Assembly: GCF_001194135.2 (NCBI RefSeq)
Contig: NC_068996.1
Location: 27,655,112-27,719,111 of the forward strand
Direction of reading: 5' to 3'
Source of the DNA: Octopus bimaculoides
Taxonomy: Eukaryota
Length of the DNA stretch: 64,000 bases
The position numbers and the translations under genes are program-made. The stretch's first letter is position 1; each line of letters begins with the position of its first letter. The notes beneath the pieces were generated by a model. It was given only the letters and a program-made list of their open reading frames with translations, was not told the DNA's origin and ran no database searches. Of the stretch, positions 248-50,308 are shown piece by piece.

Positions 248-378
248 CTTTGGCATCAGATCATCTCCAGTGACAACTGCTATGTTCATGTCAACTCCAG
301 CCTCCTTGGACAATTTCTTCAAAACTTCTGCACAAGATAATGGATTTATTCCACCTGCATTGCTAACCACACGGATTT
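248..378 (-). CDS. AtuA/DUF1446-family protein, coding exon 4 (gene continues beyond the left edge)
   Basis: Acceptor tttatcaAG and donor GTAAT. The 131 nt complete the split codon (A+AA=Lys) and read KIRVVSNAGGINPLSCAEVLKKLSKEAGVDMNIAVVTGDDLMPK, with the NAGGxNP and VAxVxGDD family motifs. Confidence 0.92.
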
Positions 379-1683
379 CTTGATAAATATATGAAACAAA
401 CCACTGTTGTTACTTAACAGAACAGCCATCATGTATAAGCAATATAAATTTAACAACAAACTGATAAATGAAAAATAATAATAAACAGTAAATAGGGAAG
501 AGGGCAGTCATTAGTGCACAACTGAGCAGATCAATGATTAATGATCGAAAGCATCCCATCCATGACCACCTCTTAGAGGTCTGCTTAGAACTACATTATC
601 TTATGTATTCATTCTTTTTATATCTTAAGAAGAGAAGGGAAACATTCACAACCTATTTCAGGGTTTTCAAGGTCTGGACCAGATCTCTAGTATTATTCCA
701 AATTCTTGCAATACACTGGACATCAATAAAAACTCCCAAACTCAAGAATTAGTACTAAACTGGGCAATGGACTATTTAAGATAGAGATTGAAGAAGGTTT
801 GACTGTTATTTCTAATAGGTCCAAAATTATTGGAACAGAAGTTACAGGTGGTCAAATAGAGAAGACAATTGACAGAGGGCTGATAATTCATATCTGTCAC
901 AAGTATTGTGTCAACATACCAATATATCTTGATGGACCAATTCTTTAAATGTATCACATCCACCAAATCAATAAGGTACCATATAACCAATCAAAGGTCT
1001 AATATACAAAATTCACACTGGCTTAATTCCTTAGAAATATCAGGACTAGCTGATGTTTAACTGTACAGATAAGGTACCAGACACCAACGAAAAAGCCACT
1101 GGATTATATTCCATAACCAGCAATCTAATAGGGAACTGAGAAAGACCTTTTAAAATCTCAAATGGCCTGATTCAACTTGTAAAAAAATACTCCAGAGTGA
1201 GAAAAGCTGGCTTTTCAAGCAATGGGAGCACTGCATAATTACTCAGTGTTTCTTTAGCTTGCAGTAAAAAGTTCAACTAGCCCAGTAGAGCAGAAGTGAG
1301 CAATGGGGTACCGCTTCATAAAAGATGTTAATATCTGCAGCATCGAATACAATTCAATTTTCTTCTATGACTTCTTTGAAATCACATGGAAAAACAACCC
1401 CATGACCCTCCCAAGAGATTCTGAAAACATTGATTATGGTAATGATGCCAATAAATGATGAGGATGAGGACGATGATGATGATGATGATGATGATGATGA
1501 TGATGATGATGNNNNNNNNNNNNNNNNNNNNNNNNNNNNNNNNNNNNNNNNNNNNNNNNNNNNNNGAGGAGGAGGAGGAGGGCAATAATGTTGATAATTT
1601 TATTGATTTCTAACATAGGCACAAGACCAGGATTTGGCGTGGGGGCAGTAAATTAAATTGATTCCAATACTTGACTTTATGTT

Positions 1684-2022
1684 ATTGACACCTAAACTGG
1701 TGCTCTATCAGTTACAATGATGAGGGCTCCAGATGATCTGATCAATAGAACAGGTTGCTCATAAAATTAACATGCAAGTGGCTGAGCACTCCACAGACAT
1801 GCATAACCTTGATGTAGTTCTCAAGGAGATTCAGGATGACACAAATATGACAAGGCTGGCCCTTTGAAATACAGGTACTGCTCATTTTTGTCAGCTGAAT
1901 GGACTGGAATAATGTGAAATAAAGTGCCTTGCTCAAGAAACACAATGTGTTGCTGGGAATTGAACTCATGACCTTATGATCATGAGCTGAATATCCTAAC
2001 TACTGAACCATGCACCTTCACA
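1684..2022 (-). mobile_element. tRNA-derived SINE (TGTGAAGG head), chimeric middle/tail
   Basis: Head TGTGAAGGTGCATGGTTCAGTAG with a B-box-like GAGTTCAATTCCC. The middle resembles the 55143 SINE and the tail resembles the 59096 SINE. Confidence 0.75.
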
Positions 2023-2288
2023 CCTGAAAGAATCATAGAAAAAGTGGACCACAGTGAAATTTGAACTCAGACTGTAAAATATCATAACTGAACACTTCAA
2101 GGCATTTTTCTGACATTACTAACAATTCTCTTGATGAAAATGATGACAATAATTATGTTAATAAAATTCATGATGATGATGATTGAAGTAGTGGTGGTGA
2201 TGGTGATGGTTGATCATAATGTTAATGATATTAATGATGAGCACGAAAAATTTAAAAAAAAAAAAAGAGAAAAATGACTTTCACTTAC

Positions 2289-2358
2289 TTTTTTCTTTGA
2301 TAGTCTTTAGATATGGTGCCAGAGAGAAATGGATAAAATCTGGAGCATATCCCATGGC
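2289..2358 (-). CDS. AtuA/DUF1446-family protein, coding exon 3
   Basis: Acceptor ttccaaAG and donor GTAAG. The 70 nt (phase 0 to phase 1) read AMGYAPDFIHFSLAPYLKTIKEK, containing the GYAPDF motif. Not in the ORF track because it is short. Confidence 0.9.
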
Positions 2359-49033: not shown

Positions 49034-49258
49034 GTTTACATTTAGAATTTATTGCAAACCTGACCTCTAGCATAAAACCAATGATTTCTAATTTAAGCAC
49101 AAGGCCAGCAACTTTGAGGGGAAGGTTTTAGTCAGTTATATCCACTTCGGTACTTAACTGATTCTTTTATTTCATTGACTATGGAAGAGTGAAAGCAAAG
49201 TTGACCTCTGTAGGGTACGAACTCAGAATATAAAGAGCAGGAAATTAGCGACAATTAT

Positions 49259-49400
49259 TGAGAGAGAGAGAGAGAGAGAGAGAGAGAGAGAGAGAGAGAG
49301 AGAGAGAGAGAGAGAGAGAGAGAGAGAGAGAGAGAAATAGAGAGAGAGAGAGAGAGAGAGAGAGAGAAATAGAGAGAGAGAGAGAAATAGAGAGAGAGAG
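49259..49400. repeat. (GA)n microsatellite
   Basis: Direct reading. Confidence 0.95.
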
Positions 49401-50145
49401 AACAACACTGATGCAAGTACTTGCATTGCAGCTATGCTAGTCCCTATACAGATTACATCGACCTCAGAACTTTACTAGTTTTTTTTATTTAATTGAACCT
49501 GGATAAAAAAGAAAGGCAACGTTGACCACTACAAGATTTGAAATCAAACTGTAGTGAATGTTGATACTAGGAGTTCAATCCTCCTCAAATCACACCCCGA
49601 CAGCCTTGAATATGTCACAACGATAATATGGCCCAGGAATGGAGGAAAAAATAGGGTGGTGGTTTCGGCCGGTATTCCTTTAATCATAAGACTAATCCAT
49701 CAGCAAGAACAAAGAGTGGTATTTCGTTTTATTAAATCCAGGAAGATGAAAGACGAAGTTGATCTCAGCGAGATTTGAACTGTTTTTTTTTTCTTCTTAG
49801 TGAACCAACTGGAGGTACACTTGAAAAATATACCCAAATAACATCGACAATAACATCACGACTAATAAATATTACATAATATTATATAAGTTACATTTAA
49901 GACAAACAAAACAAGCAAATATGAATGCATGCATGGTGCAGTCTTAAAGTGTGGGAACACTAGACAACTGCCTAGTGGTGAGGCTTCGCAAGTCTAGAGG
50001 CCCTAATTCTAATCTTTGTATATTCGGTTGTGGTGTATGTATGGAAAAGGCAGTGTATTGTTTCACCCACAGCCTCGCAGCCCTATAACGCTTTTAAGAT
50101 AGCCCTGTATGTGTTTACTTTATAAATAAAATTCTTTTAACTTAC

Positions 50146-50308
50146 CGGCAACAGCGGTGTCACCCCAAAAACCACTTGCGCACCCAATTCTAACAACATC
50201 GTGTTCATTCGGAATTTTGTAACAGTACTGTCGATTAAAACTGACAAACTTTTTCAAGGAATAACGGTTGTTTAAAAACAGTTTAGAAGACATTCTAGAA
50301 GCTGACAT
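50146..50308 (-). CDS. AtuA/DUF1446-family protein, coding exon 1 (mitochondrial-presequence-like N-terminus)
   Basis: ATG at 50308 reads MSASRMSSKLFLNNRYSLKKFVSFNRQYCYKIPNEHDVVRIGCASGFWGDTAVA+G, then donor GTAAG (phase 1). RIGCASGFWGD matches the N-terminal motif of AtuA/DUF1446 proteins. The first ~34 aa are S/R/K-rich with no acidic residue. Confidence 0.9.

Follow-up and report, generated by a model that had tools for sequence, protein, structure and literature searches.

The 5′ part of an old AtuA-family gene in Octopus bimaculoides and the probable mitochondrial lyase that it encodes

A stretch of 64,000 nucleotides from Octopus bimaculoides (NCBI RefSeq assembly GCF_001194135.2, contig NC_068996.1, positions 27,655,112 to 27,719,111 of the forward strand), hereafter the window, contains the 5′ ~50 kb of the nuclear gene LOC106882171, which encodes residues 1–155 of a 633-residue protein of the AtuA family. 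The gene as a whole extends over 123.6 kb in assembly GCA_001194135.2. Judged by its introns and its relatives, it is an old, vertically inherited metazoan member of the family, and the evidence taken together makes it probable that the product is an AtuA-family lyase that carries a presequence and releases acetate.

Membership in the family was evident from profile comparisons. The joined window peptide of 155 amino acids matches Pfam AtuA (PF07287, formerly DUF1446) with E = 8.1e-38 and 130.8 bits against a cut-off of 22.8, in an unbroken alignment of query residues 39–154 on positions 1–115 of the 437 in the profile. A preliminary description of this DNA, made from the letters alone, had named an AtuA/DUF1446 homologue and proposed exactly this search with the joined peptide; the identification holds for the peptide and equally for the full-length protein (P0159, the RefSeq ‘uncharacterized protein LOC106882171 isoform X1’ of 633 amino acids), which covers profile positions 1–435 with 470.9 bits (E = 4.8e-141). 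Beyond the window, residues 521–622 of P0159 constitute a second domain, AtuA_ferredoxin (PF23544; 118.7 bits, E = 2e-34). Local BLASTP gave 100% identity between the window peptide and residues 1–155 of P0159, and 82% with the orthologue from Argonauta hians; an NCBIfam scan of the 155-residue peptide returned no family. The invariant residues F47, W48, G49, D50, L58, D70, Y71, L72, E74, T76, S78, G91, D95, F96, N118, G120, G121, N123, P124, C127, G149 and D150 are all kept in the window peptide. Across 72 animal and 8 bacterial aligned sequences 81 residues are invariant, 21 of them within the 155 residues of the window, and among the 72 animal sequences more than 100 columns do not vary. 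Gene, Pfam domains and orthologues are all annotated in public databases already, and the novelty implied by the preliminary description falls away: the exact protein is RefSeq LOC106882171, annotated orthologues exist in well over 100 animal genomes, and some UniRef entries are even named ‘Terpene utilization protein AtuA’.

The gene model within the window is correspondingly well defined. Four minus-strand exons (coordinates in Table 1) join into a stop-free frame of 465 nucleotides, or 155 codons; all junctions are GT–AG, the splice phases 1, 0 and 1 agree across exons 1–4, and the acceptors terminate in CAG, AAG and AAG, preceded by AT-rich or pyrimidine-rich tracts. Each of the motifs RIGCASGFWGD, DYLSEITM, GYAPDF, NAGGINP and VVTGDD occurs once, exclusively on the minus strand. 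Upstream of the exon 1 ATG, an in-frame stop is reached after ~40 codons with no intervening ATG. In tblastn comparisons, exon 1 is 100% identical to residues 1–54 of P0159, the full-length query covers the window with residues 1–155 alone, and residues past 155 have no match in the window with either P0159 or the full-length protein of a eukaryotic contig (L001) described below. The four-exon, 50-kb reading given in the preliminary description was therefore exact in its exon lengths, GT–AG sites, phases and motifs, and its remark that exons 3 and 4 were missing from the open reading frame (ORF) track is explained by start-to-stop ORFs shorter than the 60-residue default. Its 155-residue frame was likewise correct, while passing over the fact that this is the first quarter of a 633-residue protein, and its view of the locus as a genuine intron-containing animal gene is upheld by intron positions common to a cnidarian, a bivalve and a teleost. 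Its mention of the digestive gland, which implies a mollusc, was also apt, the window being octopus DNA.

Ten runs of N interrupt the window, and introns account for all of them: intron 1 has seven, intron 2 two and intron 3 one. The smallest distance between a gap and an exon is 469 nucleotides, so that no gap lies within the reading frame. A coding exon hidden in a gap was considered and, for this part of the protein, excluded, because the peptide lies in one piece on the first 115 Pfam AtuA positions; the residue-for-residue match to the RefSeq protein and the same exon boundaries in Pecten, Hydractinia and Gouania also argue against it. The intronic gaps render the three intron lengths in Table 1 approximate and affect nothing else. 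A telomere-like (ACCCTA)n array of ~27 units (39607–39780, intron 1) adjoins the gap at 38736–39405 and is either an interstitial telomeric repeat or a sign that the scaffold linking exons 1 and 2 was joined doubtfully. Its position beside the gap makes the distance between these two exons uncertain; their order and orientation are right.

Comparison with other genomes provides the evidence for age and descent. When the window peptide was searched against a large protein collection, animals came out on top (scallop, pond snail, freshwater mussel, crayfish, fish, cobra and pigeon). Orthologues were collected with the full-length protein from the closest contig as query, taking the best 120 full-length hits: proteins of 620–700 amino acids are annotated in hydrozoans, anthozoans, echinoderms, molluscs, an annelid, a priapulid, a nemertean, hagfish, sharks, teleosts, amphibians, reptiles and birds, and all of those found contain both PF07287 and PF23544. 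Mammals are absent from these 120 best hits, in which birds, reptiles, amphibians and fishes are represented, and this suggests that the AtuA gene may have been lost in mammals. Exons were mapped in Pecten maximus (L002), Hydractinia symbiolongicarpus (L083) and the teleost Gouania willdenowi (L084), and the four intron positions of the window are identical in all three species. Specifically, intron 1 falls after GDTAV(S/A) in phase 1, intron 2 after K-x-P in phase 0, intron 3 within the codon preceding I(R/K)V in phase 1, and intron 4 in phase 0 after the residue aligned with K155 (octopus LMPK). Positions common to a cnidarian, a bivalve and a teleost imply that the introns are older than the cnidarian–bilaterian split, and exclude contamination and recent horizontal transfer as the origin of the gene. 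The animal orthologues are mutually 55–60% identical, and proteobacterial AtuA is 45–51% identical to the octopus protein; as the second value is little below the first, the enzyme evolves slowly.

The N-terminus provides an opportunity to consider where the protein acts. Residues 1–38 precede the start, at residue 38–39, of both the Pfam AtuA match and most bacterial tblastn matches, and therefore represent a eukaryote-specific extension; the bacterial start was judged from the tblastn match starts together with the start of the Pfam profile. The octopus extension holds seven Lys or Arg residues within its first 31, and its first acidic residue is E35. An N-terminal extension is present in 72 of 72 aligned animal orthologues (median 46.5 amino acids), with a composition of 16.9% Lys plus Arg and 3.4% Asp plus Glu, compared to 9.8% and 11.2% in the mature part. 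At most one acidic and at least four basic residues are found in the first 30 amino acids of 59 of the 67 N-termini, versus 5.9% of 30-residue windows taken from the mature part. Between Octopus and Argonauta the extension is 34% identical and the mature part 83%, and in the structure model described below residues 1–35 are disordered, with a predicted local distance difference test score (pLDDT) below 50. An extension that is basic, acid-poor, fast-evolving, disordered and absent from bacteria bears the signature of a classical presequence, and residues 1 to about 30–38 are thus quite likely to function as a mitochondrial presequence that would be cleaved after import. Possible cleavage motifs of the R-2 and R-3 types (NRY|S and RQY|C) were picked out by eye only. 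Alternative destinations were also considered: peroxisomal import by a type 1 targeting signal (PTS1) was rejected, as the C-termini of the orthologues vary and none has a PTS1-like, SKL-type ending, and a signal peptide was rejected because the N-terminus lacks a hydrophobic core. Of the mitochondrial claim in the preliminary description, the basic, acid-poor extension stands, being widespread in animals and absent in bacteria, with support that is in silico. In the fungus Verticillium dahliae, a fusion of the family member VdAtuA3 to green fluorescent protein co-localises with MitoTracker (PMC13399572).

Clues to the reaction come from the fold. P0159 was modelled confidently with AlphaFold2 using a 72-sequence alignment (pLDDT 85.8, predicted template modelling score 0.86), and a Foldseek search of the PDB returned a single match at E ≤ 0.001, chain 9evf_A from the ‘Citramalate lyase - ADP - pyruvate complex’ released on 2025-10-08 (E = 4.8e-22, probability 1.00, target-normalised template modelling score 0.66, 15% identity). 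A profile search found the same chain (9erq/9evf) with E = 3.9e-6 over ~140 residues, and it was deposited under the name ‘Acyclic terpene utilization AtuA family protein / Citramalate lyase, subunit A (cmlA)’. Direct phmmer searches of PDB sequences with the peptide and with the C-terminal domain gave nothing meaningful, so the relation to CmlA was found by profile search and fold search only; our literature searches did not find a primary paper on 9EVF. Citramalate lyase (Cml) has been reported to split citramalate directly into pyruvate and acetate (bioRxiv 10.64898/2026.01.16.699985). With 15% identity, a profile match of ~140 residues and a single fused chain, the octopus protein is a fold and superfamily relative of CmlA and no orthologue of Cml.

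The bacterial relatives offer a second line of evidence. Over residues ~39–630, the octopus protein is 45–51% identical to AtuA at 80 proteobacterial loci (tblastn), and downstream of atuA most of these loci encode a short-chain dehydrogenase/reductase, a carboxyltransferase, an acyl-CoA dehydrogenase, an enoyl-CoA hydratase and a biotin carboxylase, which is the arrangement of atuABCDEF. The Atu carboxylase and hydratase produce 3-hydroxy-3-isohexenylglutaryl-coenzyme A (CoA). Cleavage of this intermediate has tentatively been assigned to AtuA by some authors (PMC4847356). In enterobacteria, an uncharacterised DUF1446 gene was described in 2015 as adjoining the genes of the methylaspartate pathway, before it was known what becomes of citramalate in those organisms (PMC4682846).

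We favour an acetate-releasing lyase because the step proposed for AtuA and the Cml reaction are formally the same, a tertiary carbinol being converted to a ketone and acetate. After removal of the presequence, the mature enzyme would be a carbon–carbon lyase that takes the carboxymethyl group off a tertiary 3-hydroxy acid as free acetate, in the manner of CmlAB. In animals, carboxylation and hydration of a β-methyl-branched enoyl-CoA of isoprenoid or leucine-type origin would give a 3-hydroxy-3-alkylglutaryl-CoA, and this we put forward tentatively, at well below an even chance, as the substrate. An isoprenoid or branched acyl pathway in octopus, as the preliminary description had imagined, is plausible, and is made more so by the 45–51% identity to the AtuA of atuABCDEF combined with the fold match to an acetate-releasing lyase. 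A still broader and rather doubtful proposal is that non-mammalian animals, from cnidarians to birds and with octopus among them, keep a mitochondrial AtuA-type lyase of this kind as the final enzyme of a Seubert-type route. Such a route, so far considered bacterial, would proceed by methyl carboxylation, hydration and loss of acetate to take the β-methyl branch off isoprenoid-derived acyl-CoAs.

Several observations weigh against the proposed lyase. The octopus protein and CmlA share only 15% identity and can be matched in sequence over ~140 residues, so that the substrate, and even the chemistry, may differ. No atu-type partner is found near the octopus gene and no other gene was called within 10 kb; eukaryotes need no clustering of pathway genes. 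Expression of the gene is read from the RefSeq model only. An AtuA-family enzyme with some other chemistry, involving no acetate release and acting at a different branched acyl step or on an unrelated small acid with the participation of ADP or ATP, is a possible if rather unlikely alternative. It could draw on the low identity to CmlA, on the ADP in the 9EVF complex, and on the fact that no direct demonstration exists of what AtuA does biochemically, with reviews in disagreement as to whether AtuA or LiuE performs the lyase step (PMC4847356, PMC4097962); however, the proposed AtuA reaction and that of Cml are both formally a carboxymethyl cleavage to ketone and acetate, and the carboxylase and hydratase of the operon yield exactly such a substrate. 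Work on Verticillium raises a different doubt, in that VdAtuA3 is described as a partner of complex I, binding its 24-kDa subunit Nuo1, and is necessary for mitochondria to work normally, whereas the deletion strain grows normally on citronellol (PMC13399572). By analogy, the octopus protein might be a mitochondrial but mainly non-catalytic regulator bound to a complex I subunit instead of a metabolic lyase. This seems improbable to us, as Nuo1 gave no yeast two-hybrid interaction with the Danio rerio homologue or the other non-fungal homologues tested, and the authors themselves call the VdAtuA3–Nuo1 axis fungus-specific (PMC13399572). In addition, the 81 residues invariant between animals and bacteria and the 45–51% identity to operon-encoded AtuA point to conserved catalysis, and the protein's relative by fold is an enzyme whose structure contains ligands.

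Location and origin invite separate alternatives. A real AtuA-family enzyme might reside in the cytosol or another non-mitochondrial compartment, its extension being a linker or the product of a mis-called start. The case for import is composed of composition and comparison, the best hydrophobic moment of any 11 residues at the octopus N-terminus is only moderate (0.55), indicating moderate amphipathicity, and a few orthologue models have extensions as short as 15–24 residues. Nevertheless, the extension occurs in all 72 orthologues with a strongly biased composition, which it holds while changing fast in sequence; neither a hydrophobic core of the signal-peptide type nor a C-terminal PTS1 is present, and a fungal member of the family is mitochondrial by microscopy, so that a non-mitochondrial enzyme appears unlikely. 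The idea that the exons reflect bacterial contamination, recent horizontal transfer or a decaying pseudogene is scarcely credible. The 45–51% identity to proteobacterial AtuA and the existence of an intronless, frameshifted copy in the unrelated eukaryotic contig L001 could be cited in its favour, but it is refuted for contamination and recent transfer by four spliceosomal introns at positions common to a cnidarian, a bivalve and a fish, within surroundings of 37% GC that are rich in animal transposons and microsatellites. A pseudogene is contradicted by the intact frame, the presence of all family-invariant residues and the 83% identity to Argonauta in the mature part.

As a sequence feature this is an ordinary, correctly read and annotated gene, and its value is that of a pointer. 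It leads to an enzyme that is ~50% identical between octopus and Pseudomonas, occurs in most animal phyla, is very probably mitochondrial and has no published function in animals. Our literature searches for AtuA, DUF1446, terpene utilization protein and lratb.1 returned nothing on the animal protein, and a 2026 paper states that AtuA-domain proteins had been reported solely in bacteria before its own fungal example (PMC13399572). Possible loss of the gene in mammals would account for the lack of studies on it. A concrete and testable reaction type is now suggested by the citramalate lyase structure of 2025, which was deposited under an AtuA-family name: a tertiary 3-hydroxy acid would give off acetate. 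Should the enzyme act on a 3-hydroxy-3-alkylglutaryl-CoA, it would supply a missing step in the catabolism of branched-chain and isoprenoid acids in animals, and the same activity would help to settle the role of bacterial AtuA. A Seubert-type route, if real, would represent an alternative to peroxisomal α-oxidation; for an enzyme acting on 3-hydroxy-3-methylglutaryl-CoA (HMG-CoA), the alternative would be one to HMG-CoA lyase instead.

Table 1. Parts of LOC106882171 within the window, with positions counted from the first nucleotide of the window (nt, nucleotides).
Feature	Position	Strand	Description
Coding exon 1	50146..50308	-	163 nt; ATG at 50308; residues 1-54 plus 1 nt
Exon 1 donor	50145	-	GTAAGT; exon 1 holds the putative presequence and RIGCASGFWGD
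Extension-coding part of exon 1	50195..50308	-	residues 1-38; putative mitochondrial presequence, eukaryote-specific
Intron 1	12923..50145	-	37223 nt as assembled; phase 1; seven assembly gaps
Intron 1 contents			reverse-transcriptase fragments, microsatellites, telomere-like repeat
Coding exon 2	12822..12922	-	101 nt; residues 55-88; DYLSEITM
Exon 2 splice sites		-	acceptor ...TTTTCTCAG; donor GTAAGT
Intron 2	2359..12821	-	10463 nt as assembled; phase 0; two assembly gaps
Coding exon 3	2289..2358	-	70 nt; residues 89-111 plus 1 nt; GYAPDF
Exon 3 splice sites		-	acceptor ...CCAAAG; donor GTAAGT
Intron 3	379..2288	-	1910 nt as assembled; phase 1; single 54-nt gap
Coding exon 4	248..378	-	131 nt; residues 112-155; NAGGINP and VVTGDD
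Exon 4 splice sites		-	acceptor ...ATCAAG; donor GTAATT
Intron 4 start	1..247	-	phase 0; remaining ~478 codons outside the window

Further observations concern the orthologues and their annotation. Residue 112, whose codon is split by intron 3 (2289/378 junction), is Lys in Octopus and Argonauta (KEKKIRV) and Gly in at least 90% of the aligned animal orthologues (K-G-I-R-V), and this looks like a change specific to octopods at a site that hardly varies elsewhere. Many teleost and shark orthologues (e.g. P0156, P0176 and P0183) are labelled ‘uncharacterized protein lratb.1’, a symbol that stands for lecithin retinol acyltransferase. The fish and shark proteins so labelled contain AtuA domains only (PF07287 and PF23544), and the label looks like a misnomer spread from a single locus that may conceal the AtuA gene in expression studies. 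Contig L001 (ENA ERZ26222911, contig ctg1016672_5x_l) harbours a full-length, intronless AtuA gene at 10001–11897. This contig is eukaryotic, with 35% GC and with SCAMP and reverse-transcriptase genes; its AtuA is 74% identical to the N-terminal part of the octopus protein, its closest named full-length matches are hydrozoan, and it has a single frameshift exactly at the intron 4 site of other animals, consistent with either a retrocopy or an assembly error at low (5x) coverage. In Pecten maximus, intron 3 of the orthologue (L002, 14000–14750) contains ~10 tandem copies of the first 15–20 codons of exon 4 (GIRVISNAGGTNPQAC), every copy with its acceptor-side flank, forming an exon-derived minisatellite.

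Around and within the octopus gene, the long intronic and upstream ORFs contain transposon fragments only in a Pfam scan, and Rfam and tRNA scans of the window found nothing. Reverse-transcriptase fragments (Pfam RVT_1) were located at 63606–63998 (+, E = 5.8e-15), 41440–41811 (+, E = 0.0023) and 46856–47497 (−, E = 0.0014). The first lies upstream of the gene and the second in intron 1, both on the strand opposite to the gene, and as they have the peptide ...QAITEEFKTGCPWELLYADDL.LIAES... in common they come from a single retroelement family. Situated ~12 kb upstream of the start codon is part of a pogo/Tc5-type DNA transposase (62415–62858, −; DDE_1 E = 3.6e-6, HTH_Tnp_Tc5 weak). A tandem unit of ~66 nucleotides (TTTTACGTGCCACCGGCACAAAAGCCAGTCAAGCGGCACTGG...) recurs within introns at 7223–7306, 8294–8452 and 40495–40630, in both orientations and with 77–92% identity, and looks like a dispersed repeat family. 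Microsatellites in intron 1 comprise (GA)71 at 49260–49401, just ~750 nucleotides from exon 1, (TAA)56 at 28571–28739, (GT)33 at 27888–27953 and (GA)46 at 25119–25210. Several of the listed long ORFs (e.g. 27617–28463) are translated microsatellites, and others cross N gaps.

At the level of annotation, RefSeq LOC106882171 isoform X1 has the same start codon and exon junctions as the window model and adds residues 156–633, in an entry that assigns neither function nor localisation. VdAtuA3 is, like the octopus protein, a eukaryotic AtuA-domain protein, and is mitochondrial by microscopy; unlike the octopus protein, it possesses two AtuA domains and an NAD(P)-binding domain, and has low similarity to non-fungal homologues (PMC13399572). 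CmlA of Raoultella planticola Cml (9EVF/9ERQ) shares the fold of the large domain, together with the AGG and GA(D/Q)(I/V)V..GR motifs. However, Cml is described as composed of two subunits (cmlAB), whereas octopus AtuA is a single chain with a C-terminal ferredoxin-like domain, and the Cml substrate, from which free acetate is released, is citramalate, a tertiary hydroxy acid derived from glutamate and mesaconate metabolism. Compared to proteobacterial AtuA (Pseudomonas, Acinetobacter and Marinobacter), the octopus protein differs in its basic extension of 38 amino acids, its spliceosomal introns and its lack of operon partners, but both have the same two-domain architecture of PF07287 and PF23544, and FWGD, DYLxE, NxGGxNP and GDD are invariant in both.

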